Positions 10,887-64,000 of a stretch of DNA of 64,000 bases are shown piece by piece. Origin of the DNA: Octopus sinensis (Eukaryota); NCBI RefSeq assembly GCF_006345805.1, contig NC_043026.1:13061579-13125578 (forward strand), in the 5' to 3' direction. Each line of letters opens with the position of its first letter. Position 1 is the first letter of the stretch. The notes below the pieces were generated by a model. That model was not told where the DNA came from, ran no database searches, and worked only from the letters and a program-made list of their open reading frames with translations. Both the position numbers and the translations under genes were made by a program.

Positions 10887-13665
<2,779 letters not shown>

Positions 13666-13909
13666 TGTTTGTGTTTGTGTTTGTCTCCCCAACATCGCTT
13701 GACAACCGATGCTTGTGTGTTTACATCCCTGTAACTTAGCAGTTCAGTAAAAAAGGCTGATAGAATAAGTACTAGGCTTACAAAAGAATATCTCCAGGGG
13801 TCGATTTGCTTGACTAAAAGGCGGTGCTCCAGCATGGCCACAGTCAAATGACTGAAACAAGTAAAAGAATAAGAAAGCAATGTATTTTCATTTAAAATTT
13901 CCTGTAGTT

Positions 13910-16904: not shown

Positions 16905-17151
16905 GAAAAGGGGGAAATGACTTTTAATTAACAACAATTCGGTCAATGAACTTTCTTCAGCCTTCTCCACACTTCATTTGGACTTTATACCAAACATTCT
17001 ACTGGTGAGTAGAAAATATATCTACGTTATGTCTGTTCCACACTTGTAAACAAAGATCTGTGATGTCTGAGACAAGGAATTGAACCACAATAGATTAACT
17101 CACAGACGTCTGTCAGCTTTTTTTTTTTTAAAGAATTGCTCAAGAATTAAC

Positions 17152-20998: not shown

Positions 20999-23113
20999 AT
21001 GGAGAACGTTAATCATTTGGACATTTTTACCACAACTGTTTTTAACAATATGGATAAAGTTAGAATGAAGGTCGGAGGTGAGAAAGATGAAGACAAAAAT
21101 GTTCCTGAATATCACAGCGAGATTTGTCGGAAGGCATTCCCTCTCGAACGCAAAGACTTCACACACAAAGAAGTACATAGTAAGGAAAACTTGTTTCATT
21201 GTGAAATATGTGAGAAACCCTTTCTTAGAAACACCAGTCTTGTGGATCACGAATGTAGTCACGTCGGTGAAAAGTGTTTTGACTGTGAAATTTGTGAGAA
21301 ACCCTTTCTTAGAAACACCAGTCTTGTGGATCATGAATGTAGTCACGTCGGTGAAAAACGTTTTGACTGTGAAATTTGTGAGAAACCCTTTCTTAGAAAC
21401 ACCAGTCTTGTGGATCACGAACGTAGTCACGTCGGTGAAAAACGTTTTGACTGTGAAATTTGTGAGAAACCCTTTCTTAGAAACACCAGTCTTGTGGATC
21501 ACGAACGTAGTCACGTCGGTGAAAAACGTTTTGACTGTGAAATTTGTGAGAAACCCTTTCTTAGAAACACCAGTCTTGTGGATCACGAATGTAGTCACGT
21601 CGGTGAAAAGTGTTTTGACTGTGAAATTTGTGAGAAACCCTTTCTTAGAAACACCAGTCTTGTGGATCACGAACGTAGTCACGTCGGTGAAAAACGTTTT
21701 GACTGTGAAATTTGTGAGAAACCCTTTCTTAGAAACACCAGTCTTGTGGATCACGAATGTAGTCACGTCGGTGAAAAACGTTTTGACTGTGCAATTTGTG
21801 AGAAACCCTTTCTTAGAAACACCAGTCTTGTGGATCACGAATGTAGTCACGTCGGTGAAAAACGTTTTGACTGTGCAATTTGTGAGAAACCCTTTCTTAG
21901 AAACACCAGTCTTGTGGATCACGAATGTAGTCACGTCGGTGAAAAGCGTTTTGACTGTGCAATTTGTGAGAAACCCTTTCTTAGAAACACCAGTCTTGTG
22001 GATCACGAATGTAGTCACGTCGGTGAAAAACGTTTTGACTGTGAAATTTGTGAGAAATCTTGTGCTCGGGATGCTTATCTTGTTCACAGCCGTTGTCACA
22101 CCGGAAGAAAATCATCCCAGTGCGAAAAGTGTGACAAATCTTTTGACCCAAACAGAGATTTAACAACAACGCACGTGAAAATATGCAATGAAGAAAAGCT
22201 ATTCCAATGTGAAATATGCGAAAAAATTTTTGGCTCTAGTAGCATCCTGGCAACGCACATACGAATACACACTGGTGAAAAACCGTTCCATTGTGAAATC
22301 TGTGGGAAATGTTTTGCTTATAAGCAACAACTTACGACACACAGTAGTCTACACACTGGGGAAAAACCTGAATGTGAAATATGTGGCAAATCTTTCTCTC
22401 GAAATGCTTATCTTATTGTTCATAAACGAAGCCACACCGGAGAAAGACCATTCCGATGTGAAATGTGTGAGAAATCTTTTGTTTCCAGTAGTTTGTTAAC
22501 AACACACAAAAGGGTACACACTGGGGAAAAGCCATTCCGATGTGAAGTATGTGAGAAATTTTTTGGTTCTTGTAGCGTCCTATCAAGACATAGAAAAGTA
22601 CACAGTGGGGAAAAACCGTTTAGATGTGAAATCTGTGGGAAAGGTTTTGCCTATAATTGTGACTTAAACAGACACGTAAGAGTCCATACAGGAGAGAGAC
22701 CATTCCATTGTGAAACTTGTGGTAAATCTTTCTCTGACAATTCTAGTCTTGCAAGCCACAGAAGTATGCACACCGGGATAAAACAGAATAACTGTGAGAC
22801 ATGTGGTAAATCTTTTCTTCATAAATCTCATCTTACAGTTCACAGACGCAGTCATACGGGAGAAAAGCCATTCCGGTGTGAGACATGTGGGAATTCTTTT
22901 GCTTCCGGTTACGTCCTGACGCAACACAAACGGACCCATACGGGAGAAAGACCATTCCATTGTGAGACATGTGGCAAATCATTCACTCAGAATTCTCATC
23001 TAATTGAGCACAAACGTCGACACACGGGAGAAAAACCATTCCAATGTGAAGTATGTGAGAAATATTTTGTGTCTTCTAGTAAATTAAAGAATCACAAAAG
23101 GATTCATTCTTGA
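20999..23113 (+). CDS. C2H2 zinc-finger protein ZNF-4, 704 aa: 10 near-identical fingers, 2 degenerate fingers, 11 diverse fingers
   Basis: Single ORF with MENVNHLD leader and finger consensus throughout. Confidence 0.93.
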   Translation: MENVNHLDIFTTTVFNNMDKVRMKVGGEKDEDKNVPEYHSEICRKAFPLERKDFTHKEVHSKENLFHCEICEKPFLRNTSLVDHECSHVGEKCFDCEICEKPFLRNTSLVDHECSHVGEKRFDCEICEKPFLRNTSLVDHERSHVGEKRFDCEICEKPFLRNTSLVDHERSHVGEKRFDCEICEKPFLRNTSLVDHECSHVGEKCFDCEICEKPFLRNTSLVDHERSHVGEKRFDCEICEKPFLRNTSLVDHECSHVGEKRFDCAICEKPFLRNTSLVDHECSHVGEKRFDCAICEKPFLRNTSLVDHECSHVGEKRFDCAICEKPFLRNTSLVDHECSHVGEKRFDCEICEKSCARDAYLVHSRCHTGRKSSQCEKCDKSFDPNRDLTTTHVKICNEEKLFQCEICEKIFGSSSILATHIRIHTGEKPFHCEICGKCFAYKQQLTTHSSLHTGEKPECEICGKSFSRNAYLIVHKRSHTGERPFRCEMCEKSFVSSSLLTTHKRVHTGEKPFRCEVCEKFFGSCSVLSRHRKVHSGEKPFRCEICGKGFAYNCDLNRHVRVHTGERPFHCETCGKSFSDNSSLASHRSMHTGIKQNNCETCGKSFLHKSHLTVHRRSHTGEKPFRCETCGNSFASGYVLTQHKRTHTGERPFHCETCGKSFTQNSHLIEHKRRHTGEKPFQCEVCEKYFVSSSKLKNHKRIHS
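21200..22057 (+). repeat. Coding 84-bp tandem repeat x10 (CEICEKPFLRNTSLVDHE[C/R]SHVGEK[R/C]FD)
   Basis: Exact 84-nt period with only a few variable sites per unit. Confidence 0.97.
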
Positions 23114-28971: not shown

Positions 28972-29922
28972 ATGGAGAACGTTGATCAGTTGGACATTTC
29001 AAACACAACTGTTTTTAAGAACGGAGATGCAGTTGAAGAGACAGAGAGAGATGAGGAAGCTGAAGACAAAAGTGTTGGTGAATTTCGCTGTGAGATTTGT
29101 AGGAAGAAATTCTCTTCAGAAGATGAAGTCTTCTCGCATGAAGAAATACACAAGAAGAAGAAACGGTTCCGTTGTGAAATCTGTGGGAAATCATTTAGTG
29201 CTAAAGCTTATCTTTTGATTCACAAACGTAGTCATACAGGAGAAAAACCAATCCATGGGAAATGTTTTGTTTCCAACGGAGATTTAAAAAGACACAAAAG
29301 GATGCACTCGGGCGCAAAACCTTACAGCTGTGAAGTATGTGGGAAAATTTTCAGTCAAAATTCTAATCTTGTTGTTCATAAACGGAGTCACACAGGAGAA
29401 AAACCATTCGAGTGTGAAATTTGTGGGAAATCTTTTGTTTCCAACGGAGATTTAAAAAGACACAGAAAAATCCACACGGGGGAAAAACCGTTCCACTGTG
29501 AAGTATGTGGGAAAACTTTCAGTCAAAATTCAAATCTTGTTGTTCATAAACGGAGTCACACAGGAGAAAAACCATTCGAGTGTGAAATATGTGATAAATC
29601 TTTTGTTTCTAGTACTGTCCTAACAACACACAGGCGAATACATACGGGTGAGAAACCTTATCATTGTGGGATGTGTATGAAATCGTTCACCGATCATTCC
29701 AGTCTTGTATTCCACGAACGACAACACACGGGGGAGAAGCCTTATCCTTGTGAGATATGTGGGACCCTGTTTATGTGTAGCAGTGACTTAACAAAACACA
29801 TAAGAGTTCACACGGGAGAAAAGCTTTTCCACTGTGGAATATGCGGAAAATCTTTTACTCATAATTCTAGCCTGGTTAGCCACAAACGAAGTCACATCAC
29901 AGGTCGGAAAAGCTTGTTGTGA
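28972..29922 (+). CDS. C2H2 zinc-finger protein ZNF-5, 316 aa, 9 complete fingers plus one half finger
   Basis: MENVDQLD leader; the third unit lacks CxxC (EKPIHGKCF, in-frame deletion); the two-finger unit SNGDLKRH/QNSNLVVH is duplicated. Confidence 0.92.
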   Translation: MENVDQLDISNTTVFKNGDAVEETERDEEAEDKSVGEFRCEICRKKFSSEDEVFSHEEIHKKKKRFRCEICGKSFSAKAYLLIHKRSHTGEKPIHGKCFVSNGDLKRHKRMHSGAKPYSCEVCGKIFSQNSNLVVHKRSHTGEKPFECEICGKSFVSNGDLKRHRKIHTGEKPFHCEVCGKTFSQNSNLVVHKRSHTGEKPFECEICDKSFVSSTVLTTHRRIHTGEKPYHCGMCMKSFTDHSSLVFHERQHTGEKPYPCEICGTLFMCSSDLTKHIRVHTGEKLFHCGICGKSFTHNSSLVSHKRSHITGRKSLL

Positions 29923-43522: not shown

Positions 43523-43981
43523 ATGCCACGAACACCAGATGCGAAAGAGCTGTCAGATTTTCAAAGAGGACGTATTGTGGGTCAGTCTGATAGTGGACGT
43601 AGCCAGCGTAAGATTGCACAAAACCTTGGAATTCCTCTTGCCACAGTCAACAGAGTGATTGTCCAGTTCACCAGCGAAGGAAAGGAGTCAACCGCCTCCC
43701 GCTCAGGTCGACCTGGGCCCTCTGATAAGTGTCTTCAGACTGTTAAAAAAATTGTTGAAAGTAACCCCCATTGCAAGGCAGCTGATGTTGCAGAACAACT
43801 TCAAAAGAGTCGGAGAACTTCTGTGAGGTATCTTCATCAACTTGGTTACTACGGTAAAGTAGCCAGAAGGAAACCTTCTTTGACCCACAGATATCCAAAG
43901 GATTGGACAAATAAAATGGTAGAGAAAGCCAAATGGGTTAAAACATTAAAACCTGCAGAAGAAATGTCAACTACATCCTAA
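43523..43981 (+). CDS. Tc1-derived HTH protein, 152 aa (copy 2)
   Basis: Same length as copy 1, with 4 aa differences; same upstream acceptor tttttcatttcag. Confidence 0.7.
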
Positions 43982-44685: not shown

Positions 44686-45635
44686 ATCGACCCCAGTGTT
44701 TCACTGGTACTTAATTCATCGACCCCCACCGAAAGGATGAAAGGCAAAGTCGACCTCGGCGGAATTTGAACAAACAAGAACAGACAAACGGATTAAGTCG
44801 ATTATATGGACCCCAGTGCGTAACTGGTACTTATTTAATCGATCCCGAAAGGATGAAAGGCAAAGTCGACCTCGGCGGAATTTGAACTCAGAACGTAGCT
44901 GCAGACGAAATACCTATTTCTTTACTACCCACAAGGGGCCAAACACAGAGGAGACAAACAAAAACAGACAAACGGATTAAGTCGATTATATGGACGCCAG
45001 TGCGTAACTGGTACTTATTTAATCGATCCCGAAAGGATGAAAGGCAAAGTCGACCTCGGCGGAATTTGAACTCAGAACGTAGCTGCAGACGAAATACCTA
45101 TTTCTTTACTACCCACAAGGGGCTAAACACAGAGGGGACAAACAAGAACAGACAAACGGATTAAGTCGATTATATGGACCCCAGTGCGTAACTGGTACTT
45201 ATTTAATCGATCCCGAAAGGATGAAAGGCAAAGTCGACCTCGGCGGAATTTGAACTCAGAACGTAACTGCAGACGAAATACCTATTTCTTTACTACCCAC
45301 AAGGGGCCAAACACAGAGGAGACAAACAAGAACAGACAAACGGATTAAGTCGATTATATGGACCCCAGTGCGTAACTGGTACTTATTTAATCGATCCCGA
45401 AAGGATGAAAGGCAAAGTCGACCTCGGCGGAATTTGAACTCAGAACGTAGCTGCAGACGAAATACCTATTTCTTTACTACCCACAAGGGGCCAAACACAG
45501 AGGAGACAAACAAAAACAGACGAAGGGATTAAATCGATTATATCGACCCCAGTGCGTAACTGGTATTTATTTAATCGACCCCGAAAGGATGAAAGGCAAA
45601 GTCGACCCTGGTGGAATTTGAACTCAGAACGTAGC
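44686..45635 (-). mobile_element. Family D SINE body array, about 6 units
   Basis: gaaaggatgaaaggcaaagtcgacc occurs 6 times, mostly at about 183-bp spacing. Confidence 0.7.
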
Positions 45636-48049: not shown

Positions 48050-48883
48050 TTAATTCCTCGGTTCAAACTTTAGTCTTTTGAGCAATGTTGACATAATCTG
48101 AGGCATTTGTTTACAGCTATCGTATTCCAGATTATCCAACTTTCTTAATTCCAAAGAGCCAACACGTTTACAGACAGCAGTTAACAGTTTCATGATTTCA
48201 TATTCAGTGCCATATTTCACCAAAACTTTACTTAAAGTTTGCATAAACCACGAACCCTTACGTTTATGAATGACTGACGGATATTTATCAGACGACGAAT
48301 GGAAAACCAACATATCTGCCATGATTGGAATTTTCGGTGGCTTTCTTTCAGATTCTTCTTCCTCGGCATCTTTTCTTTCGACTCCATCATCAATCTTGCT
48401 TCCACGACATGCTTCAATAAATATTAATTTAGGTATTCCTGTCAGAGATGGACAGCGATCGGGTCTCAGGCAAGAAAGCAATTCGTCCAGCTCAACTTCA
48501 CCCTCGTATCCACGTATAATATCGTTTCCTTTACCGTGGCTCAGAATCGCACAAATAAAGCAATCAATATTAATTTTAGGATCGATTTGGCCCAAATCTT
48601 CTAAAGTCCCGAGCATTTCTTTGGCTGTAAAATCTGTAAATACATTGATATCATCTTCATGAAATCCAAGATTTTCTAAAGCCTTTTTAAAATGTTTTGT
48701 GTCTTTCGATGAGCCGTGACGAGTTTCAAGTCTTGGGTCACTGAAATTTTTCACGTTGAAAATGTAGGCAACACCTCGCTTTTCATGTGTCATGTCATAT
48801 TTTTCGAAACATTTCATTAAATCTTCCTCGGTTGGTAAATCGAACTGGGCGCATGTACTACCATTTACATTTACAGTATCCAT
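48050..48883 (-). CDS. Intronless caspase-3/7-like peptidase C14 A, 277 aa (EACRG)
   Basis: KRGVAYIFN, R.GSSKD, CFICAILSHG (catalytic His), PKLIFIEACRG (catalytic Cys, 48401-48415), IPIMADML, GSWFMQ, KQMP; short prodomain. Confidence 0.93.
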   Translation of the reverse strand: MDTVNVNGSTCAQFDLPTEEDLMKCFEKYDMTHEKRGVAYIFNVKNFSDPRLETRHGSSKDTKHFKKALENLGFHEDDINVFTDFTAKEMLGTLEDLGQIDPKINIDCFICAILSHGKGNDIIRGYEGEVELDELLSCLRPDRCPSLTGIPKLIFIEACRGSKIDDGVERKDAEEEESERKPPKIPIMADMLVFHSSSDKYPSVIHKRKGSWFMQTLSKVLVKYGTEYEIMKLLTAVCKRVGSLELRKLDNLEYDSCKQMPQIMSTLLKRLKFEPRN

Positions 48884-48979
48884 AGTAGTCGCGGCAGCAA
48901 TGCGAAAAAGTGAATTTACTTCCTGGTCTGAAATATTATTCGCGTCACTTCACCCGACTAACGTCAGGTTATTATTGAA

Positions 48980-48990
48980 TGCGCATGCGT
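48980..48990. promoter_or_regulatory. NRF1/EWG-like palindrome TGCGCATGCGT upstream of each caspase ORF (also 53384-53394 and 61054-61064)
   Basis: Conserved 47-100 nt upstream of all three ATGs while surrounding sequence diverges; perfect TGCGCATGCGCA also at 58556-58567. Confidence 0.5.
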
Positions 48991-49451
48991 TAACAAAACC
49001 CAGCTCTCGGCTTCGAAGTGGGAACACAATTGAAAATTATTTTCGGTGAAGTGCGGCTTTTGCGTTCCGGAACCACCGCAAAATATTCCCAGTTCCTTTA
49101 AATTGCATTTCGTCCAAAATGAAAGTGAAGTTCTTTTTCAAAAAGAATTAATTGAAACAACAGTTCGTCGAATGTAAACTGCCATCGGCCGCAGAAATGA
49201 GGTCACACTTCACACAAGCTTCTATAAAAGGAAATGTCAATAAAAATACGGGAGCGACCACGAGGAAACGGAGGATGACCACGTGCTTTTTTATAGGACC
49301 AGAGTCGCCTTCAGATGATAACTTTTCCTTTTTTTTTCTTTCTTTCATTCTTTTTGTTGTTGCTGTTGTGAAAATGCTTATTGCCTTACTGTAATGAGTG
49401 AGCTGGATCGGAGATGATATGGTTTTAAACAACATTAATTAAAACATAATT

Positions 49452-49497
<46 letters not shown>

Positions 49498-49835
49498 TCG
49501 TGAGCATTCTGAAAGAGAAAGAAAGAAACACGATTGCCGATAGAGAAATGCACAGAAGGTTGGTACTACTTAAGAAGAGTGGTCCCGGTGCGCGCACTCG
49601 CGTACTCGCGTACTCGCGCTAGCTAGGCGTGACTAGTCGATCCTACAACGACTACCTAGCAAAGTAAATAAAACACAAAATAAATAATTTTTTTTTTTAC
49701 ACAAAGTAAATAATTTTTCTAAACAAAGTAAATAAAACACAAAAACACCAAGGATCGACTAGTCACGACTAACTAGTGCGGATGCGCGACTACGCAAGTG
49801 CGCGCACCGGGACCACTCTTCTTAAGTAGTACCGC
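49452..49835. mobile_element. CpG-rich foldback element (right arm truncated)
   Basis: ggtactacttaagaagagtggtcccggtgcgcgcact is inverted at about 49795-49832. Confidence 0.7.
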
Positions 49836-49959
49836 TGTTTGGTATCCCCGTATATATGATAATTCAAAATATAAACAATAACAAACCATTAAATAATGTC
49901 TATTTTTGAAATGAAACGAAACTAACAGTAATATGACAAAATAATGTTTATTTCTGTTC

Positions 49960-49962
<3 letters not shown>

Positions 49963-49999
<37 letters not shown>

Positions 50000-50500
50000 G
50001 AAATTATTGTATACAGTGCTCAGGTGCACCACAACTTGTCAAAAGTGCATATAAAGCATATGCAGTAATGTACAAATGTCTGGGAAGCGAACAGTGTATG
50101 AGTCAGATACATGCTTGTGTAGGGGAGAAAATCAGATGTAGTGTTGGCGAATCTCAGAAAGCATGGAAGTTTTGAAGGATGCAGTGCTCCGACAACTAAC
50201 AACTGATGTCGGCAGTTTGTTCCATGCTTCAGCAATTCTCAGCGTGAAAAAACGACTTTATTTACATTGGAGAAGTTTACTCCTTCGTTTCTTCCTTTTA
50301 ATTGCAAAGTCCTCGATCAGATACTCGCTGCGGCCACATGAACTCTTCTAAATTATATTTCTGATCATATAACCGCTTGGAATGTTGCTGTAACAAGGTT
50401 GAAGTGATTTCTTTTGTGATGTAAACCATTTACAATTTTCCTGGTGTCTCCACTTCCCTTGATATCCTAAGCACATGTCTATTCTGCTTAATGGTTAATC
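49963..50500 (-). mobile_element. CR1-clade LINE 3' end with (TTA)n tail
   Basis: Minus-strand peptide FFTLRIAEAWNKLPTSVV; (ATA)n at 49963-49997. Confidence 0.7.
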
Positions 50501-50514
50501 TAGTGCTGTTGATA

Positions 50515-51775
50515 ATTTACGCAAGATTTAGGAATTTAATTGTTTTATCAACAAATTTAGGAATTTAATTATTTAATCAATAAATTTATTAAATTTAGGA
50601 ATTTAATTATTTTATCAACAAATTTAGGAATTTAATTATTTAATCAATAAATTTATTAAATTTATGAATTTAATTATTTTATCGCTAGATTTAGGAATTT
50701 AATTATTTAATCAATAAATTTATTAAATTTAGGAATTTAATTATTTTATCGCTAGCTTTAGCAATTTAATTATTTTATCAACAAATTTATGAATTTAATT
50801 ATTTAATCAATAAATTTATTAAATTTATGAATTTAATTATCTTATCGCTAGATTTAGGAATTTTATTATTTTATCAACAAATTTAGGAATTTAATTATTT
50901 AATCAATAAATTTATTAAATTTATGAATTTAATTTTTTTATCACTAGATTTAGGAATTTAATTATTTAATCAATAAATTTATTAAATTTAGGAATTTAAT
51001 TATTTTATCGCTAGCTTTAGGAATTTAATTATTTTATCAACAAATTTATGAATTTAATTATTTAATCAATAAATTTATTAAATTTAGGAATTTAATTATT
51101 TTATCGCTAGATTTAGGAATTTAATTATTTTATCAACAAATTTAGGAATTTAATTATTTAATCAATAAATTTATTAAATTTAGGAATTTAATTATTTTAT
51201 CGCTAGATTTAGGAATTTAATTATTTTATCAACAAATTTATGAATTTAATTATTTAATCAATAAATTTATTAAATTTAGGAATTTAATTATTTTATCGCT
51301 AGATTTAGGAATTTAATTATTATATCAACAAATTTAGGAATTTAATTATTTAATCAATAAATTTATTAAATTTAGGAATTTAATTATTTTATCGCTAGAT
51401 TTAGGAATTTAATTATTTTATCAACAAATTTAGGAATTTAATTATTTAATCAATAAATTTATTAAATTTAGGAATTTAATTATTTTATCGCTAGATTTAG
51501 GAATTTAATTATTTTATCAACAAATTTATGAATTTAATTATTTAATCAATAAATTTATTAAATTTATGAATTTAATTATCTTATCGCTAGATTTAGGAAT
51601 TTTATTATTTTATCAACAAATTTAGGAATTTAATCAATAAATTTATTAAATTTATGAATTTAATTATTTTATCGCTAGATTTAGGAATTTAATTATTTAA
51701 TCAATAAATTTATTAAATTTAGGAATTTAATTATTTTATCGCTAGATTTAGGAATTTAATTATTTTATCAACAAA
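50515..51775. repeat. AT-rich minisatellite with higher-order structure (29/38/29-bp monomers)
   Basis: Monomers tta(g/t)gaatttaattatt + ttatcaacaaat / taatcaataaatttattaaat / ttatcgctagat, mostly in A-B-C order. Confidence 0.9.
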
Positions 51776-52512
51776 ATTTTCTGCTGATAGCAAACTACAT
51801 AAGAATCTTTGTTCCATACTTTACATATTTTAATAAATTAAGAACTAACGTAAAAGCTAATACATTTGACTATTTTGTTGTCATTTCAGAGACTTTATGT
51901 TAATAAGAGACATTTTATCTTAGGAGATTATCTACCATAGTAAAAAAAAAAGAGAAAAAAGCAGAATAATTGGACAAATTTTACGCAATGGTGCTGAGAT
52001 AGCTTAATGCAGTGAGAGAAGAAAGATAAAAAAATTCTCTTTTGCAGACAAACTTTTACGAATCCAGCGATATAGGAAAATACATGAATAAAATAGCCTA
52101 GATATTAATATTGTTCATATTTAGTTGTATATAAAAGAATGTTGGTTCAATTTTCAGAATGTAGGATTATTTTGTAATTTAGAATGGACCTATAAGTCAC
52201 TGGTGTTCTTAGTAAAATTTGTGGTAGGAAATAGTTTTAGTTAAGCACCTTCAAATGTTAGTGGATATTTATTAAGTCAAATCAAGTTTGTAATCATATT
52301 AGTAATTATTTAGTTGAAAATATTACATTTATCTATTTATCAATTTCTGCTGTAGGCATCATATGTGAGAATAGTTATTTATTTGTAGATATATGAATTC
52401 ATAAAATATACACTTTTTGTAATCATGAATATATGTATAATTTGAAGATGTATCTGAAGTTCTCACCGTAAGAAGCTCCGTTTCTCTTTAAGGATCCCAC
52501 ACCGAAAATATT

Positions 52513-53337
52513 TTACTTTCTCGGTTCAAACTTGAATTCTTTGCGCAACGTCGACATAATCTGAGGCATTTGTTTACAACCATTGTATTCCGGATTATCC
52601 GAACTTTGGAATTCTAAAGAGGCAACATACTTAGAGACAGCGGTTAAAAGTGTCATCATTTCGTATTTAGTGCCATATTCCTTCAACATTTTACTTAAAG
52701 TTTGCATAAACCACGAACCTTTTTCTTTATCCCTCATTGACGGATATTTATTTGATGACGAATGGAAAACCAACATATCTGCCATGATTGGAATTTTCGG
52801 TGGCTTTTTTTCAAATCCTAAACCGCAAGCATCTTTTTTTTCGACTCCAAGATCAGGCTTGCTTCCACGACATGCTTCAATAAAGATTAATTTAGGTATT
52901 CCTGTCAGAGATGGACAGCGATCGGGTCTCAGGCAAGAAAGCAATTCGTCTAGCTCAACTTCACCGTCGTATCCATATATGATATCGTTTTCATCACCAT
53001 GGCTCAGAATCGCACAAACAAAGCAGTCAATATTACCTTTAATATGAGAATCCTCTTCGTTAAAATCGTTCAAAACCGCGAGCATTTCTTTCGCTGTTGC
53101 ATCTGTACACACGTTGATATCATTCTCGTGAAATCCAAGATCTTTTAATGCGCTTTTAAAATCTTCTGCATCTTTCGATGAGCCGAGACGAGTTGGAAGG
53201 TCCATGAAATTTTCATTGTTGAAGATGTAGGCAACACCTCGCTTTTTATGTGTCATATCATATTTATCGAAATATTTATCGTCCATAGTAGTCCCTGTGA
53301 CAATGCCATCGCCTGAATCTACTTCCTGGTCTGACAT
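52513..53337 (-). CDS. Intronless caspase-3/7-like peptidase C14 B, 274 aa (EACRG)
   Basis: AILSHG, IFIEACRG (52864-52878), SMRDKEKGSWF; N-peptide DQEVD|S. Confidence 0.93.
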   Translation of the reverse strand: MSDQEVDSGDGIVTGTTMDDKYFDKYDMTHKKRGVAYIFNNENFMDLPTRLGSSKDAEDFKSALKDLGFHENDINVCTDATAKEMLAVLNDFNEEDSHIKGNIDCFVCAILSHGDENDIIYGYDGEVELDELLSCLRPDRCPSLTGIPKLIFIEACRGSKPDLGVEKKDACGLGFEKKPPKIPIMADMLVFHSSSNKYPSMRDKEKGSWFMQTLSKMLKEYGTKYEMMTLLTAVSKYVASLEFQSSDNPEYNGCKQMPQIMSTLRKEFKFEPRK

Positions 53338-53776
53338 GTTATTTCTGTTGCATCAAGTGAAACCAGGTCAGGTTATTATCCAATGCGCATGCGTTAGCGA
53401 AATCCAACTCCTGGCTTCGAAGTGAAAAACAAAATTGGAAAAAATTTTGGGGCCAAGTGCGGCTTTTGTATTCCTGAACCCCTGCAAAATATTCCCAGTT
53501 CCTTTAAATCGCATTTCGTCCAAAATGAAAGTGAAGTTCTTTTTCAAAAAGAACTAATTGAAATAACAGTTCGTCGAATGTAAACTGCAATCGGCTGCAG
53601 AAATGAGGTCACACTTCACACAAGCTTCTATAAAAGGAAATGTCAATAAAAATACGGGAGCGGCCACGAGGAAATGGATTTTAATAACACACACACACAC
53701 ACACATATATATTTTCACCCATCGCGGTGGGTTCTGGAACGTAACACCCGCAATAGTCAAAGGGTTACTGTATTAC

Positions 53777-54745
53777 GGCGAGCTGGCAGAATCGTTAGCA
53801 CGCCGGGCGAGATGCTTAGTGGTATTTCGTCTGCCGTTACGTTCTGAGTTCAAATTCCGCCGAGGTCGACTTTGCCTTTCATCCTTTCGGGGTCGATTAA
53901 ATAAGTACCAGTTACACACTGGGGTCCATATAATCAACTTAATCCGTTTGTCTGTCCTTGTTTGTCCCCTCTGTGTTTAGCCCCTTGTGGGTTGTAAAGA
54001 AGTAGGTATTTCGTCTGTCACTACGTTCTGAGTTCAAATTCCGTCGAGGTCGACTTTGCCTTTCATCCTTTCGGGGTCATTAAATAAGTACCAGTTACAC
54101 ACTGGGGTCCATATAATCAACTTAATCCGTTTGTCTGTCCTTGTTTCTCCTCTCTGTGTTTAGCCCCTTGTGGGTTGTAAAGAAATAGGTATTTCGTCTG
54201 CAGCTACGTTCTGAGTTCAAATTCCGCCGAGGTCGACTTTGCCTTTCATCCTTTCGGGGTCGATTAAATAAGTACCAGTTACACACTGGGGTCCATATAA
54301 TCGACTTAATCCGTAATCCGTTTGTCTGTCCTGTTTGTCCCCTCTATGTTTAGCCCTTGTGGGTAATAAAGAAATAGGTATTTCGTCTGCCGTTACGTTC
54401 TGAGTTCAAATTCCGCCGAGGTCGACTTTGCCTTTCATCCTTTCGGGGTCGATTAAATAAGTACCAGTTACACACTGGGGTCCATATAATCGACTTAATC
54501 CGTTTGTCTGTCCTTGTTTGTCCCCTCTATGTTTAGCCCCTTGTGGGTAATAAAGAAATAGGTATTTCGTCTGCCGTTACGTTCTGAGTTCAAATTCCGC
54601 CGAGGTCGACTTTGCCTTTCATCCTTTCGGGGTCGATTAAATAAGTACCAGTTACACACTGGGGTCCATATAATCGACTTAATCTGTTTGTCTGTCCTTG
54701 TTTGTCCCCTCTGTGTTTAGCCCCTTGTGGGTAGTAAAGAAATAT
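53777..54745 (+). mobile_element. Family D SINE: one head plus 5 tandem bodies
   Basis: ggcgagctggcagaatcgttagc head, then about 185-bp units; inserted into the caspase-B upstream region and absent at the paralogous 49265 site. Confidence 0.75.
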
Positions 54746-54925
54746 GTATTACCACGTGCTTTTTTATAGGACCAGAGTCGCCTTCAGATGATAACTTTTC
54801 CTTTTTTTTTCTTTCTTTCATTCTTTTTGTTGTTGCTGTTGTGAAAATGCTTATTGCCTTACTGTAATGAGTGAGCTGGATCGGAGATGATATGGTTTTA
54901 AACAACATTAATTAAAACATAATTG

Positions 54926-55316
54926 AGTGTGTGTGTGTGTGTGTGTGTGTGTGTTGTGTGTGTGTGTGTGTATTCGTGAGCATTCTGAAAGAGAAAGAAA
55001 GAAACACGATTGCCGATAGAGAAATGCACAGAAGGTTGGTACTACTTAAGAAGAGTGGTCCCGGTGCGCGCACTCGCGTACTCGCGCTAGCTAGGCGTGA
55101 CTAGTCGATCCTACAACGACTACCTAGCAAAGTAAATAAAACACAAAAAACACAAAGTAAGGATCGACTAGTCACGACTAGCTAGCGCGGATGCGCGACT
55201 ACGCGAGTGCGCGCACCGGGACCACTCTTCTTAAGTAGTACCAACCTTCTGTGCATGTTTCTATCGGCAATCGTGTTTCTTTCTTTCTCTTTCAGAATGC
55301 TCACGAATACACACGT

Positions 55317-55403
<87 letters not shown>
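54926..55403. mobile_element. Complete CpG-rich foldback element bounded by (TG)n and (CA)n
   Basis: Inverted arms run from the (TG)n tract through tattcgtgagcattctgaaagag...gtcgatcct and back; short A-rich spacer. Confidence 0.75.
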
Positions 55404-55408
<5 letters not shown>

Positions 55409-55625
55409 GACTAAACGAAGCAAGATATGACATTGCTTCGTTTTACACCTTCGTATACATTTTTTGCTCACAGTCAAGGATGTGTATGCCGTTCAAACCG
55501 AAAGGGTCCAAAAGCTCACATTAAAATATTGTAAAATATAAAAAAAAAATTGAGATGGGGAGGAAGGAGGAAAATAAATTTTGGGAAGTTTTCTTTTTTT
55601 TTTTTTTGCTGTTCGTAATCTTCCA

Positions 55626-56210
55626 TAGGCGCAGGAGTGGCTGTGTGGTAAGTAGCTTGCTAACCAACCACATGGTTCCGGGTTCAGTCCCACTGCGTGG
55701 CATCTTGGGCAAGTGTCTTCTGCTGTAGCCCCGGGCCGACCAATGCCTTGTGAGTGGATTTGGTAGACGGAAACTGAAAGAAGCCTGTCGTATATATATA
55801 TATAGGCGCAGGAGTGGGCCTGTGTGGGTATATCTTGCTAACCAACCCATGTTCCGGTTCAGTCCCACGCGTGGCAATCGTGGGCAATGTCTTTGCTGTA
55901 GCCCCGGGCCGACAATGACTTGTGAGTGGATTTGGTAGACGGAAACTGAAAGAACCCGTCGTATATATGTTGTATTTAATATATATTATAGATTTGTATG
56001 TGTTTGTGTGTCTGTTTTGTCCCCCTAGCATTGCTTGACAACCGATCTGGTGTGTTTACGGTTAGTCCTACGTCCCCGTCACTTGCGTTCGGCAAAAGAG
56101 ACCGATAGAATAAGTACTGGGCTTACAAAGAATAAGTCCCGGGGTCGATTTGCCTCGACTAAAAGGGGGCTCCAGCATAGCCGTAGTCAAATGACTGAAA
56201 CAAGTGAAAG
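55626..56210 (+). mobile_element. SINE family A with duplicated head
   Basis: Heads at 55626 and 55803; tail to 56210; forms a tail-to-tail inverted pair with the copy starting at 56255. Confidence 0.7.
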
Positions 56211-56254
56211 AAAAAAGTATTAACGAAAAAATCTGAATGCTAAGAAAGTTTTGA

Positions 56255-56863
56255 TACTTGTTTCAGTCATTTTGCTGCGGCCATGCTGGAGCACCGCCTT
56301 TTTAATCGAGCAAATCGACCCCGGGACTTTTCTTTTTGTAGCCCAGTACTTATTCTATCGGTCTCTTTGCCGAACGCTAGGTTTACGGGGACCGTAAACA
56401 CACCAGCATCGGTTGTCAAGCAATGCTAGGGACACACACACCCACACACACACACACACATACACACACACACCACACACACCACACCACACATAATATA
56501 TATATATAACATACACATATATACGACGGGCTTCTTTCAGTTCAGTCTACCAAATCCACTCACAAGGCAATGGTCGGCCCGGGCTATAGCAGAAGACACT
56601 TGCCCAAGATGCCACGCAGTGGACTGAACCCGGAACCATGTGGTTGGTAAGCAAGCTACTTACCACACAGCCCCCCTACAACTATTACTAATATATATAT
56701 ATACGACGGGCTTCTTTCAGTTTCCGTCTACCAATCCACTCACAAGCAAATGTCGGTCCGGGGCTATAGCAGAAGACACTTGCCCAAGATGCTCGCAGTG
56801 GGACTGAACCCGGAACCATGTGGTTGGTAAGCAGGCTACTTACCACACAGCCTCTCCTACAAC

Positions 56864-56894
<31 letters not shown>

Positions 56895-57656
56895 TATAAT
56901 ATATATATTATAATATATACGACGGGCTTCTTTGAGTTTCCGTCTACCAAATCCACTCACAAGGCATTGGTCGGCCCGGGCTATAGCAGAAGACACTTGC
57001 CCAAGATGCCACGCAGTGGGACTGAACCCGGAACCATGTGGTTGGTAAGCAAGCTACTTACAAACAGCCTCCCTACCCTATATATATATATAATAATATA
57101 TATACGACGGGCTTCTTTTCAGTTTTCCGTCTACCAAATCACTCACAAGGCATTGGTCGGGCCCTGGGCTATAGCAGAAAACACTTTCCCAAGATGGCCA
57201 CGCAGTGGGAACTGAACCCGGAACCATTGTTGGTAAGCAGGCTACTTACCACACACAGCATCTCCTACAACTATTATATTATATATATACGACGGGCTTC
57301 TTTCAGTTTCCGCTCTACAAATCCACTCACAAGGCAATGGTCGACCCGGGCCTATAGCAGAAGACACTTGCCAGGATGGCACGCAGTGGGACTGAACCGG
57401 AACCATGTGGTTGGTAAGCAAGCTACTTACACACAGCCTAGCCTCCCCTACAACATATATATATATATAGATATATATATACGACGGGCTTTTCATCAGT
57501 TTCCGTCTACCAAATCCACTCACAAGGCATGGTCGGCCCGCGGGCTATAGCAGAAGACACTTGCCCAAGATTCTACGCAGTGGGACTGAACCCGGAACCA
57601 TGTGGTTGGTAAGCAGGCTACTTACCACAAGCCCAGCCCTCCCCTACAAACTATAT

Positions 57657-57689
<33 letters not shown>

Positions 57690-58070
57690 TATATAATATA
57701 TATAATATATATATACGACGGGCTTCTTTCAGTTCCGTTACCAAATCTCACTCATCAAGGGCAATGGTCGGCCCGGGGCTATAGCAGAAGACACTTGCCC
57801 AGGATTCCACGCAGTGGGACTGAACCCGGAACCATGTGGTTGGTAAGCAAGCTACTTACCACACAGCCTCCCCTACAACTATATTATATACTATATATAC
57901 GACGGGCTTCTTCAGTTGTCCGTTTCTACCAAATCCAATCACACAGGATTGGTCGGACACCGGGGCTATAGCAGAAGACACTTGCCCAAGATTGCCACGC
58001 CGTGGGACTGAACCCGGAAACCATGTGGTTGGTAAGCAAAGCTACTTACCACACAGCCACCTCCTTGCAT
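56255..58070 (-). repeat. Family A SINE with about 8 tandem copies of its 5' half (about 190-bp unit)
   Basis: atacgacgggctt...ttaccacacagcc repeats start at about 56523, 56703, 56920, 57104, 57289, 57481, 57715 and 57899; indel-noisy. Confidence 0.75.
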
Positions 58071-58150
58071 CTATGGGCAATCTTGGGCCGACCAATGCCT
58101 TGTGAGTGGATTTGGTAGACGGAAACTGAAAGAAGCCCATCGTATATATG

Positions 58151-58181
<31 letters not shown>

Positions 58182-58709
58182 TTGTGTGTCTGTATTTGAC
58201 CCCCCACCCAACATCGCTTGACAACCGATGCTGGTGTGTTTACGTCGCCGTAACTTAGCGGTTCGGCGAAAGAGACCGATAGAATAAGTACTGGGCTTAC
58301 AAAAGAATAAGTCCCGGTGTCGATTTGCTCGACTAAAAAGGCGGTGCTCCAGCAAGGCCGCAGTCAAATGACTGAAACAAGTAAAAGAGTAAAAGAGTAC
58401 GGTTTCTACTTCGCGGATTTTCACTTATCGCGGTGGGTTCTCGAACGTTAACACCCGCAATAGTCGAAGGGTTTCTGTATTATACTTTTAATGTCCTGTG
58501 AAAGCAACATTTCGTTAGAAGTCGGTGATGGCGGTGAAAAGCGGTTATACGGTTGTGCGCATGCGCAGGCTTTCACACGCACGCGCACACACAGACACAC
58601 ACACACACGCGCAAAAACACCCATTGACCTTCAATGGAATACTGACACCCGCACTCGCACGACGTATGAACGTATGTTTGTACGTGTATATGAGAGACGA
58701 CGGGCGCAA

Positions 58710-58749
<40 letters not shown>

Positions 58750-58864
58750 ATGGGGTTCATGTAAACACAACACTATGAAGCTGAAGACGATTGCACACGC
58801 AAACACACACACGCACGCACACACACACACACACACATCCGTGTATATTTTATATACATGTACA

Positions 58865-59278
58865 TGGGCGCAGGAGTGGCTGTGTGGTAAGTAGCTTGCT
58901 TACCAACCACATGGTTCCGGGTTCAGTCCCACTGCGTGGCATCTTGGGCAAGTGTCTTCTGCTATAGCCCCGGGCCGACCAATGCCTTGTGAGTGGATTT
59001 GGTAGACGGAAACTGAAAGAAGCCTGTCGTATATATGTATATATATATATATGTATATGTGTGTGTGTGTGTTTGTGTGTCCGTATTTGTCCCCCTAGCA
59101 TTGCTTGACAACCGATGGTGGTGTGTTTATGTCCCCGTCACTTAGCGGTTCGGCGAAAGAGACCGATAGAATAAGTACTGTGCTTACAAAAGAATAAGTC
59201 CCGGGGTCGATTTGCTCGACTAAAAAGGCGGTGCTCCAGCATGGCCGCAGTCAAATGACTGAAACAAGTAAAAGAATT
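58865..59278 (+). mobile_element. SINE family A, full length
   Basis: Head to gaaacaagtaaaaga tail. Confidence 0.85.
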
Positions 59279-60147
59279 AAAACTATTTTCCCATTCAGCC
59301 CATATTCGTAGCATATCCAGTTTTCTGGTGATCGCTTCATGTTTTTCTCTACTTTTCGGGAGAAACTTACTTAGGCGCAAAGGAAATTATCCAGTCCGAA
59401 CAACATACGAAGTTTTGCACTTTTGGAAGGCAGGAAATTGCTCCGCAGGCAGACAAAATCACAGAAGACGCTTTCATTCACACTTCAGATATTTTAATAA
59501 ATTACGAACTAACTTAAAAGCTAATGCATTTTATTATTTCATTGCCAATTCAGAGACTTCACGTTAAGAAGAGACACATTTTATTAGGAAGTTATCCATA
59601 AGAGTTTTTAAAAATTAGGAGAGGATTTAAAAAAGCATTACGCAATGGTGCTTCGATAGTTTAATGCAGTGAGAAAACAAAGAAAAATTATTTCTCTTTG
59701 GTAGACAAACTGGTACGAATCCAGCGATATATGAAAGCATATGAATAAAATAGCCTACATATTAATATTGTTCATATTTAGCAAGGTTAGTTCAATTTTC
59801 AGGGTGTAGAATTATTTTGAAATTTAGAATGTTCACAGAAGGCATTGGAGTTCTTAGTAAAATTTATGCTAGGAAATAGTTTTAGTTAAGCGTCTTAAAA
59901 TGTTAGAGGATATTTATTAAAGCAAAATCAAGTTTGTAGTCGTATTAGCAATTATTTAGTTGGAAATATTACCTTTATCTTTTCATCAATTTATATTGTT
60001 GGTATAATGTAAAAATAATGTAATTATTTGTAGATATATGAATTCATAAAATATACTTCTTTTGCAATTGTAGATATATTCTTTTATATTCTTTTAATAT
60101 AACATGCACATCCAACGGAATTTCTCACTGTAGAAAGCTGAAATATT

Positions 60148-60972
60148 TTATTTCTTCGCTTCAAACTTTAGTTCTTTAAGCAATGTCGACACAATCTGAG
60201 GCATCTGTTTAAGATGAGCCTTTTCCTCGTCACTACTTTTAGTTTCTAAAGAGGCAACGTGGTTAGAGACAGCTGTTAAAAGTGTCAAGATTTCTTTTTT
60301 AGTGCCATATTTGGACAAAATTTTACTTAAACTTTGCATAAGCCACGATCCTTCAGTTTGCGTGAATGACTTATATCCATTATAACACGCATGAAAAACC
60401 AGCAGATCTGCCATAATTGGAAAATTGGTTTCATTTACTTCTGCTTCAGGTTCATCGCTTATGTCGATTCCTTTATCTCTCTCTATTCCGCGACATGTTG
60501 CAGTAAAAATTAATTTAGGTACTCCACTTAAAGATGGACATTTTTCGGGTGTCAGGTAAGAAAGCAATTCATGCAGTCCAACTGGAACACGGCCCTTTCC
60601 AAAAATCGTATCGTTTGTATGACCATGACTGATAATTGCACAAACAAAGCAACCAATATTTTCGTAACGACCATCTTTGTTAAAATTCTCCAAAACTTTA
60701 CTCATTTCACCGGTTGTTAAATTTGGCCAATCTACGATACACCTTTCAGAAAATCCAAGTTTTATTAATGCCGCTTTAAAAGCTTCTGTATCTTTTGATG
60801 AGCCTTCACGAGATTCAGGACGGTTGTTTTTGAAATTTTCGTGGTTGAAGATGTAGGCTACAAGTCGCTTTTTATCATCCATATCATATTTAGGGAAACG
60901 TTTACTAAGATCTTCCTTAGTTGGTGAATGGGGCTGATCGCTTGTCCCAACGTTTTCATCTCCATCTGCCAT
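60148..60972 (-). CDS. Intronless divergent caspase-like peptidase C14 C, 274 aa (ATCRG)
   Basis: KRLVAYIFN, SREGSSKD, CFVCAIISHG, PKLIFTATCRG (60487-60501), FPIMADLL, GSWLMQ, KQMPQ. Confidence 0.9.
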   Translation of the reverse strand: MADGDENVGTSDQPHSPTKEDLSKRFPKYDMDDKKRLVAYIFNHENFKNNRPESREGSSKDTEAFKAALIKLGFSERCIVDWPNLTTGEMSKVLENFNKDGRYENIGCFVCAIISHGHTNDTIFGKGRVPVGLHELLSYLTPEKCPSLSGVPKLIFTATCRGIERDKGIDISDEPEAEVNETNFPIMADLLVFHACYNGYKSFTQTEGSWLMQSLSKILSKYGTKKEILTLLTAVSNHVASLETKSSDEEKAHLKQMPQIVSTLLKELKFEAKK

Positions 60973-62366
60973 GGTAGTCGATGTAAGAATGTGATGAGCA
61001 GAACCTGGTTCCGTTTATTATATATTATTTCTGTCCTCTCAAATTGCTATCAATGCGCATGCGTTAACGAAATCCAACTCCTCGCTTCCAACTCAAAATA
61101 TACAAATGCATCAGAAATTCTCACCGTAATAATCTGCGTTTCTATTTAAGGACTCCACACCTTAAGGGGTTACACGATAAAAACTATCTGAGGGCTGAAC
61201 TCATAGGCGAGAGGGTTAAACGTTCAGATGCACGGTGTTCGATGATATCGATAGAATGTCTTTCTTCCCTTATTTGGCATTTAAAATTTCGGCAATGTTT
61301 CGTTGATGGTTTAAATCTTCGGCAATTTCCGTAAGGAAATTTTTATTTCTTTATTTTATTTACGTCATTTTGTAGGCGACATTTGCTTAGAAATCGTTGA
61401 GAGAGGGGAAAAGTGAACCACACCGAAGAGTGCGTGCGCAACCATTCACACACACACACACACACACACATACACACACACACATACACACACATACACA
61501 CACACATACACACATACATACATACATACACACACACGTACACATACAACCACTGACTTTTGTTGTGGATGAGTTGAATATTGAAACCCTCACTCGCAGA
61601 ATGCATGAATGCATTTAGGTGTATGTGCGAGAAAATGGCTGTGAATGTGTGTGTGTGTGCGTGTGTGTATGTGTGTGTGTGTGTGTATGTGTGTGTGTGC
61701 GCGCGTGCGTTTGAGTACGCGAGTGTATTTGCGGACTCGACCCTAGCGTCTGTTTCCATCCTTGCCCTCCCCACCGACTTCAAAGCAAATGTCGACTTTA
61801 AGAAAACATGAAATGGTAGTAAATAAATAAAATTATTTACGGAAATTTCAAAACAATAAGCTGCAAGAAAATAACAGGTAAATGACAAGATTGCCTGCCT
61901 TGCAGGTATAGAAAATTGCAGAAGCTTTCAGTCAAATTTAAATATTTTAAGAAATTAAGAACTGGCGTAAAAGCAAATACATTTTATTATTTCGCCGGCA
62001 TTTCAAAGATTTAATCTTAATAGCAAAATTTATAAGGAGATCATCCACCAGATTTTAAAATTAGCAGAAAAATTGGAAAAGATATTTAGAAATTGTGCTG
62101 AGATAGAATAATACAGTGAGTAAGAAAGAAAAAACAATTTCTCTTCGGCAGAGAAACTTTTACGAATGCAGCGGTATATGAAAGCGTATGAATAAAATGG
62201 CGCGCATATTAATATTGTTCATATTGTATATAAAAGAATGTTAGTCAATATTCAGAGTGAAGAGTTATTTTGAAATTTAGAATGTTCCTAGAAGGCACTG
62301 GAGTTCTTGGTAAAATTTACGTTAGGAAATAGCGTTAGTGAAACATCTCATTATATGATATTTCTG

Positions 62367-63936: not shown

Positions 63937-64000
63937 CCGTATGTGTGTATGTGTGTGTGTGTGTGTGTCCGTATGTGTATGTGTGTGTGTGTGCGTGTCC
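63798..64000. repeat. (TG)n-rich microsatellite
   Basis: Direct inspection. Confidence 0.9.

Follow-up and report, generated by a model that had tools for sequence, protein, structure and literature searches.

Caspase genes of the array

The window analysed here, a stretch of 64,000 nucleotides (nt) from Octopus sinensis, carries three minus-strand open reading frames (ORFs), termed A, B and C, which are full-length effector-type (caspase-3/6/7-like) caspase genes arranged in a head-to-tail array. Protein A is encoded on chromosome CM016888.1 of assembly GCA_006345805.1, at about 13.10-13.12 Mb. Residues are numbered separately within each ORF, and designations such as R64, Q161 and R207 follow caspase-3 numbering.

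48050..48883, minus strand: caspase paralogue A, 277 amino acids (aa), single coding exon; dyad H116/C159; R55/E157/I205; linker VERKD172-A
52513..53337, minus strand: caspase paralogue B, 274 aa, single coding exon; dyad H113/C156; R50/E154/R202; linker VEKKD-A
60148..60972, minus strand: caspase paralogue C, 274 aa, single coding exon; dyad H116/C160; R55; T-A158-T159-C160-R-G; linker IDISD-E

The three ORFs are present exactly where a first-pass annotation of this DNA had placed them. All 233 model positions of the Pfam domain Peptidase_C14 (PF00656) are covered in each protein (E values of 1.9e-49 for A, 1.7e-55 for B and 3.4e-41 for C); this is the sole domain, starting at residue 33-38 and preceded by a short pro-peptide without a CARD or DED. 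As judged from HMMER comparison with solved structures, A is nearest to caspase-7, -3, -6 and Sf-caspase-1 from Spodoptera (E about 1e-40). The AlphaFold2 models of A (pLDDT 78.7, pTM 0.79) and C (pLDDT 77.0, pTM 0.78) both exhibit the caspase fold, with low confidence confined to the N-terminus, the inter-subunit linker and, for A, the L3 loop. The structural comparison with caspase-3/7 which the first-pass annotation had proposed supports the assignment, since both models superpose in Foldseek with TM scores of 0.81-0.87 when normalised to target length (about 0.85 for A); for C, the values against caspase-7 and Sf-caspase-1 are about 0.8. A viral or horizontal origin of the single-exon genes was considered and rejected, because the best viral structural match, an ascovirus caspase, shows 17% identity, compared to 31-35% for animal caspases.

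The names of these proteins in public databases ("caspase-7," "caspase-1-like," "caspase-like isoform X2") are automatic. The NCBI annotation fuses B and A into one gene and the B ORF has no entry of its own in the protein collection, while isoform X2 (P0029) joins residues 1-44 of B to A from residue 48. The junction of this isoform is found at homologous positions of both genes (window 48740-48745 and 53203-53210), within the shared AAAATTTCA and lacking a GT donor. It is therefore doubtful as evidence of splicing, and looks like the product of template switching, a model artefact, or a B/A fusion (recombinant) allele generated by unequal crossover.

A and B have 200-290 nt of upstream flank in common, together with part of the downstream flank.

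48884..49170, minus strand: upstream flank of A, with homology to that of B and to the sequence flanking an A-like gene in another octopod
53376..53576, minus strand: upstream flank of B, with homology to that of A

The homology of these flanks indicates that the duplicated unit includes a putative promoter or 5' untranslated region, and it points to tandem DNA duplication rather than repeated retroposition. The genes had previously been described as intronless, which is correct for the coding sequences (CDS), but does not set them apart, since the canonical O. sinensis caspase-3-like gene P0201 (QACRG, SWR; locus L007 1001-1867, CM016863.1) also consists of a single uninterrupted coding exon. 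A retrogene origin specific to the family is thus unsupported, given this gene structure of P0201 and the shared flanks of A and B, and intron-free effector caspase genes may be general in octopus. A Logan contig (L006) coding for P0011, the closest relative of A, was discarded as transcript evidence because its colinearity with the genomic sequence flanking A makes it look genomic.

No further caspase copies were detected inside the window by tblastn. The array is expected to continue beyond it, with the main exon of a fourth paralogue just past position 64000, as the following match shows the same spacing from C as in the O. vulgaris locus L002.

61746..61796, minus strand: match of 17 residues to the short terminal exon of the next upstream paralogue (P0020/P0021 type, QACRG)

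Active-site residues and the S1 pocket

The active-site residues were placed by two routes, a HMMER alignment to caspase-7 and a profile alignment with the numbering of a mammalian caspase-3, which was verified at R64, H121, G122, Q161, C163, and R207. Reading at the codon level yields the motifs AILSHG, IEACRG, and YPSVIH for A, AILSHG, IEACRG, and YPSMRD for B, and AIISHG, TATCRG, and YKSF-TQ (L3 loop KSF-TQTE) for C. The catalytic His-Cys dyad and the oxyanion Gly following the His are kept in all three proteins, in agreement with the previously noted retention of SHG and the catalytic Cys, and the pentapeptides EACRG (A, B) and ATCRG (C), reported earlier in place of QACxG, are likewise correct. 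The codons concerned are the following.

48413..48415, minus strand: codon 157 of A, GAA (Glu) at the Gln161 position; CAA in every Q-type paralogue compared
48269..48271, minus strand: codon 205 of A, ATT (Ile) at the Arg207 position; AGG in B and other paralogues, AAG in P0011
52876..52878, minus strand: codon 154 of B, GAA (Glu) at the Gln161 position, from the codon reading
60496..60501, minus strand: codons 158-159 of C, GCA ACA (Ala-Thr) replacing Gln-Ala, from the codon reading

The S1 triad R64/Q161/R207 is thereby represented by R/E/I in A, R/E/R in B and R/A/deleted in C, with both alignments agreeing for A and B, and the canonical Arg/Gln/Arg combination is found in none of them. 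Of the triads originally assigned, those of A and B as well as R64 and Ala161 of C stand, but the Thr proposed at position 207 of C is better replaced by a deletion, because the L3 loop is one residue shorter and contains neither Arg nor Lys. Assembly errors do not account for the Glu and Ala codons, since the same residues occur in an independent O. vulgaris assembly for A (P0030), B (GAA), and C (P0023). A-to-I recoding, for which a check of the transcripts had been suggested, does not lead back to the canonical residues either: according to the codon table, edits of GAA give only Gly or Glu and those of ATT give Val, so Gln and Arg are unreachable.

By sequence and fold, A, B, and C are caspases and not meta- or paracaspases. 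With the C14A effectors (caspase-3, -6, -7, and Sf-caspase-1) they share the fold, 31-35% sequence identity, a short N-terminal peptide, the SHG and CRG motifs, the linker Asp and the C-terminal strand, whereas they differ in a pentapeptide starting with Glu or Ala, in the replacement (A) or deletion (C) of Arg207, in Pro for Tyr204, and in Val, Met, or Phe for Trp206. Alterations at S2/S4 are common to the whole octopus family, where Tyr204 is changed to Pro and Trp206 to Phe, Ile, Met, or Val. The linker Asp residues listed earlier (VERKD, VEKKD, IDISD) are real, and their column in the family alignment (D172 in A numbering) shows a conservation of 90% or more. The interface strand at the C-terminus, KQMPQIxSTLxKxLKF, hardly varies throughout the family, A, B, and C included.

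If pseudo-caspases are strictly defined by the loss of the catalytic Cys and/or His, the three proteins do not belong to them, as their dyads are intact; in the broader sense of the caspase-12 type, with the dyad present and a P1-Asp ligand substituted, all three do. Caspase-12 carries Arg341Lys and is regarded as a pseudo-caspase despite an intact dyad, the substitution being treated as predicting lost function (PMC11121540). The octopus proteins resemble rodent caspase-12 in the retained dyad, the substituted P1-Asp ligand, the tandem arrangement with active paralogues and the proposed function as modulator (PMC11121540). In contrast to them, caspase-12 contains a CARD and only one conservative Arg-to-Lys exchange, whereas A and C are two ligands short and the Glu of A and B brings in a negative charge.

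These comparisons bear on the view that the genes code for ordinary Asp-specific executioners which tolerate the substitutions and still perform useful cleavage after Asp. B does retain both Arg residues, and the linker site VExxD-A of the family implies Asp-directed processing within it. However, 149-150 of 168 background caspase domains have kept Gln161 and Arg207, and even the Arg341Lys exchange of caspase-12 is taken as predicting lost function (PMC11121540). Moreover, only one of the three P1 ligands is left in A and in C, which suggests weak or no binding of a P1 Asp, and such a view therefore appears very improbable.

An Octopus-only family and its orthologues

All close homologues of A, B, and C are from Octopus, with O. 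sinensis, O. vulgaris, and O. bimaculoides as the named species, and identity to the nearest caspases outside the genus does not exceed 41%, in support of the lineage-specific family postulated in the first-pass annotation. The family occupies at least two clusters on different chromosomes, and canonical octopus caspase-3-like genes (QACRG, SWR) are found elsewhere in the genome. Non-canonical residues at one or more of the positions R64, H121, Q161, C163, and R207 are present in 11 of the 25 octopus sequences compared: A, B, and C, the O. vulgaris orthologue of C (L/A/deleted), P0011 (Arg207Lys), P0008 (QASRG), P0010, P0013, and P0016 (EASRG), and P0015 and P0017 (Arg64Cys plus His121Cys). 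The paralogues indeed differ from each other in the S1 pocket, as had been claimed, and the dyad itself is lost in P0008, P0010, P0013, P0015, P0016, and P0017.

In a neighbour-joining tree, A groups with P0009 from O. bimaculoides and with P0011, both of which contain QACRG (bootstrap value 100%), B with P0003 from O. bimaculoides, which also contains QACRG (78%), and C with P0023 from O. vulgaris, on a long branch beside the QACRG genes P0019-P0022. The syntenic array of O. vulgaris shows the order fragment, P0020, C, B, A. The fragment is a shortened caspase sequence upstream of the P0020/P0019 gene, which is present in O. vulgaris (L002 1417-1701) as well as in O. bimaculoides (L004 6255-6743) and represents an old pseudogene at the cluster edge. 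The O. vulgaris copy of A differs from that of the window by one residue and keeps Glu and Ile. The two copies of C are identical from nt 181 on and show 65% identity at nt 121-180, nearly all of their differences being located in one segment.

60793..60912, minus strand: 5' part of C (CDS nt about 61-180), holding the Arg55 codon and nearly all differences from O. vulgaris C

Since this stretch resembles a neighbouring QACRG paralogue, it is likely a gene-conversion patch. Position 64 of C is unstable between the sibling species, with Arg in O. sinensis and Leu in O. vulgaris. Mosaic patterns of identity are widespread in the family, as exemplified by B and P0002, which are 96-98% identical at nt 541-810 and 64-70% at nt 181-300, indicating that gene conversion is frequent among the octopus caspases. 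About 90 nt around the Q/E codon are nearly identical in all paralogues. Gene conversion blurs the orthology relations, the dating of the Q-to-E exchange and the distinction between one and two gains of Glu in A and B. The O. bimaculoides cluster was compared without one 16.7-kb stretch.

Glu161 across animal caspases

The meaning of Glu at position 161 may be judged from its occurrence in other caspases, represented by a background of 194 caspase domains from the 147 nearest 50%-identity cluster representatives among the top 150 hits of a profile search. Position 161 is occupied by Gln in 167 of these domains and by Glu in five, and none contains EACRG. The nucleophile Cys163 is changed to Ser in four of the five Glu161 domains (Fisher p = 8e-6), and after inclusion of the octopus family, Glu is found in 7 of 12 Ser domains compared to 3 of 195 Cys domains (Fisher p = 3e-8), with kinship handled in these statistics by the identity cut-off only. 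Where Gln has been replaced in Ser-type domains, the new residue is Glu in 5-6 of 6-7 independent events, against the roughly 1/7 that single-base neighbours would predict (p = 3e-4).

Pairwise identity among the Glu-bearing domains does not exceed 42%, and their sources are the hemichordates Glandiceps and Ptychodera, the midge Diamesa, the katydid Anabrus (EASKG), a cricket (EACQI), and a soft coral (in a degenerate domain). EASRG occurs in both hemichordate genera, the paralogues of which have kept QACRG. The carriers of EASRG or EASKG are P0138 and P0180 from hemichordates, P0058 from Diamesa, domain 1 of P0032 from Anabrus, and P0013, P0016, and P0010 from Octopus; associated loci are L008 10001-10849 and L009 10001-10888. 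Within the octopus family, three of the five Glu-bearing members contain EASRG, and the exchange of Cys for Ser arose twice, as shown by the codons AGT in P0013/P0016 and TCT in P0008. In the lineage of P0008 and P0010, Ser came first and Glu was added later.

Because of this tie to the replacement of the nucleophile by Ser, the Q-to-E exchange is read as a mark of inactivated rather than re-targeted caspases, and as far as the sequences indicate, the repeated co-occurrence of Gln-to-Glu and Cys-to-Ser in animals that are not closely related suggests a shared route to a pseudo-enzyme. A and B share with the dead EASRG caspases the Gln-to-Glu exchange two residues before the nucleophile and are 59-66% identical to the octopus EASRG members, but have retained the catalytic Cys where the latter have Ser. 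To our knowledge, proteins of the EASRG type have not been studied. A further proposal is that EA[C/S]RG constitutes a convergent, selected signature of regulatory pseudo-caspases, which would have arisen independently in octopods, hemichordates, and insects; Glu would fill the protein's own S1 pocket and hold the active-site loops in a state resembling the substrate-bound one, and A and B would represent intermediates with a plugged pocket and the nucleophile still present. This proposal is unlikely, if far from negligible.

The first-pass annotation had left the choice between a new specificity of each paralogue and a role as decoy or modulator. The former would mean re-targeted proteases with a working dyad, an S1 pocket accepting residues other than Asp (neutral in A, larger and less basic in C), and distinct substrates for each enzyme. 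The intact dyad, oxyanion Gly, CRG motif and fold speak for this, as does the role of the position two residues before the Cys as an S1 determinant across clan CD, and the S2/S4 residues 204 and 206 have been altered family-wide as well. In Dronc (PFCRG), metacaspases (D-x-C), and MALT1 (D-M-C), a residue other than Gln at this position goes along with a non-standard P1 preference, and it is acidic in the Arg/Lys-specific enzymes. The analogy to these clan CD members is apt for A and B with respect to the acidic residue two positions before the Cys, but does not extend further: metacaspases and MALT1 are acidic also at both Arg positions, whereas A, B, and C have kept Arg64 and the acidic residue is confined to position -2 of A and B. 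A preference for basic P1 residues would call for acidic residues at both Arg positions as in MALT1 and metacaspases, and sits poorly with Arg64 in all three proteins and Arg207 in B, which leave the pocket without the acidic character of the Arg/Lys-specific relatives. Furthermore, Glu161 travels elsewhere with the loss of the nucleophile, and sibling species would be expected to share the residues that set the specificity of a working enzyme, while position 64 of C varies between Arg and Leu and B is broken in O. vulgaris (see below). Re-targeting thus appears unlikely, though still a serious rival, and of the two halves of the original claim, the one invoking decoys or modulators fares better.

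Selection and maintenance of the reading frames

Pairwise dN/dS ratios were obtained by the Nei-Gojobori method and are only weakly informative on function, given gene conversion and the difference of about 0.4% between O. sinensis and O. vulgaris.

A and P0011 (closest relative): 0.35
B and P0003: 0.50
A and B: 0.67
C and P0020/P0019: 0.88-0.91
P0020 and P0019 (both QACRG): 0.89
C of O. sinensis and C of O. vulgaris: 1.08
P0016 and P0013 (EASRG pair): 1.24, not significantly above 1

Identity between A and B amounts to 80% in the CDS and 83-84% in the flanks, and that between P0020 and P0019 to 81% in the CDS and 90% upstream. Such faster divergence of the CDS than of the flanks would fit diversifying selection and, together with the intact dyad, leaves some room for a new specificity. 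The chance of an open frame under random substitution at the observed levels amounts to 0.005-0.06 for A and C and to 2-11% for B, and all insertions and deletions in the family alignment are in frame. The family is fast-evolving under weak or mixed constraint, with the frames kept on the whole, and gene conversion may contribute to the open frames. Six positions are conserved in the background yet variable in the octopus family (entropy below 0.8 bits in 168 background caspase domains and above 0.9 bits in the family), namely G45, D131, K154, F158, Q161, and R207.

Probable pseudo-caspases or decaying copies

Rather than ordinary executioners of cell death, A, B, and C most likely represent pseudo-caspases with a regulatory role or copies in decay. 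We tentatively favour, with somewhat less than even confidence, the view that they are dyad-intact pseudo-caspases, which could probably still be processed and might pair with, or compete against, their QACRG neighbours. The family expands through tandem DNA duplication, undergoes reshuffling by gene conversion and evolves fast, and residues required for Asp-directed proteolysis have been lost repeatedly among its members. The loss takes the form of an S1 Gln-to-Glu exchange in A and B, accompanied by that of Arg207 in A, and of the absence of Gln161 and Arg207 in C, to which the absence of Arg64 is added in O. vulgaris. Binding of a P1 aspartate would thereby be abolished or greatly weakened in all three proteins. 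In A and B, the new carboxylate may act as a "plug," pairing with the remaining Arg and blocking the pocket at the site where the substrate carboxylate should sit; Glu may perhaps be favoured in inactivated caspases by neutralising a now-useless pair of Arg residues. The proteins have retained the caspase fold, the strand of the dimer interface and the Asp site between the subunits, so that canonical caspases could still cleave A, B, and C. Conservation of this linker Asp and of the C-terminal strand suggests that processing and dimerisation are still possible, which leads to the model of decoys or modulators pairing with, or competing against, the QACRG neighbours.

By analogy, such a role is suggested by cFLIP-L, a pseudo-caspase modulating its paralogue (PMC7586951, PMC11121540), and by CASPS18, a decoy from Aedes aegypti with an enhancing effect on its paralogue CASPS19 (Bryant et al. 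2010, cited in PMC4840389). Both are duplicates of an active caspase encoded nearby and act through the paralogue instead of proteolysis, to which A, B, and C may be likened (PMC4840389; PMC7586951; PMC11121540). Unlike A, B, and C, which are known here from their sequences, CASPS18 and cFLIP-L lack catalytic residues and their modulator role was tested experimentally.

Several points weigh against this interpretation. The catalytic Cys and His and the oxyanion Gly are intact, so activity with another P1 residue is possible; executioner caspases are stable homodimers, and heterodimers among A, B, and C are an assumption of the model. The exact A and C proteins are recorded only on the genome contig, with no transcript contig encoding them, and the sole transcript-like model linking B to A contains the non-canonical junction described above. 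Gene conversion can hold frames open without selection, and the dN/dS ratios of about 0.9 in the C subfamily and of 1.24 in the EASRG pair indicate that purifying selection is weak or mixed. Finally, the B gene of O. vulgaris (L002 16881-17701) shows a 1-bp deletion (TTT to TT) in codon 152, two codons before the Glu, a frameshift that fits decay as well as dispensability. This copy has kept GAA and differs from that of the window by only three other substitutions, and the deletion could reflect either a true pseudogene or an assembly error. The O. vulgaris annotation spans it by a 392-aa B-A fusion model (P0030).

The genes might accordingly be seen as products of birth and death without function, in which the S1 changes are the first lesions and the frames are open through youth and conversion patching. 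Decay or dispensability is favoured by the broken B of O. vulgaris and by the instability of Arg64 in C, and the same picture would accommodate the missing NCBI protein entry for B, the ratio of 1.08 for C between the two species together with the location of its Arg64 codon within the conversion patch, the ratios near 0.9 in the C subfamily, the mosaic identity among paralogues, the shortened caspase fragments beside the cluster in O. vulgaris and O. bimaculoides, and the lack of a transcript contig encoding the exact proteins. It sits less well with the open frames of A and C, which are only 0.5-6% likely by random substitution, with the indels being all in frame, with the ratio of 0.35 between A and P0011, and with a variation at otherwise conserved positions that is concentrated on Q161 and R207. 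In addition, dead EASRG paralogues are intact in O. sinensis, O. bimaculoides, and the two hemichordate genera, showing that lost catalysis alone does not bring about gene loss. Decay without function is thus less probable than the favoured view, but a serious rival to it.

Other features of the window

Another tandemly expanded family lies beside the caspase array, consisting of long C2H2 zinc-finger ORFs with 10-16 fingers each on both strands.

2300-4027, 13910-15355, 17080-18450, 20999-23113, and 28972-29922, both strands: C2H2 zinc-finger ORFs

Transposon remnants are present at 9229-10275 and 43523-43981 and comprise a reverse-transcriptase ORF (RVT_1, E = 7e-31) and an ORF of 152 aa with helix-turn-helix domains of the Tc1/Sleeping-Beauty type. 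Tandem SINE-like arrays (units of 184 bp and 172-188 bp) at 44770-45635, 53821-54750, and 55625-58058 flank and separate the caspase genes, the units at 44770-45635 and 53821-54750 apparently being reverse complements of each other. Scans for tRNA genes and Rfam families in the 44-64 kb part of the window detected none. An AT-rich minisatellite with periods of 67, 96, and 259 bp and about 21% GC extends between A and B (50516-51769). The region 10000-14000, with a GC content of 14-25%, no runs of N and overlapping minus-strand ORFs without Pfam match, is probably a low-complexity repeat.

Significance

Caspase biology rests on a near-absolute specificity for Asp, and we know of only a handful of natural caspases departing from the Arg/Gln/Arg pocket. 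No paper describing the octopus family, an EACRG caspase or the association of Glu with Ser was found in the open-access literature, and the family is not described in the papers on cephalopod and lophotrochozoan caspases. Lineage-specific caspase expansions containing pseudo-enzymes are a known kind, of which the octopus family is a variant. It represents a young and well-resolved family that takes the S1 pocket apart in several ways while the rest of the protein is kept, and canonical sister genes a few kb away as well as a sibling species are at hand for comparison. Its members may therefore serve as natural "mutants" for the contribution of each S1 ligand and for the route from enzyme to pseudo-enzyme. 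If the genes should turn out to be unexpressed, they would constitute an ordinary birth-and-death family; the interest would be higher if they are expressed and either have a regulatory role or cleave after residues other than Asp, in which case the family would add an unstudied layer to the regulation of cell death or immunity in cephalopods.

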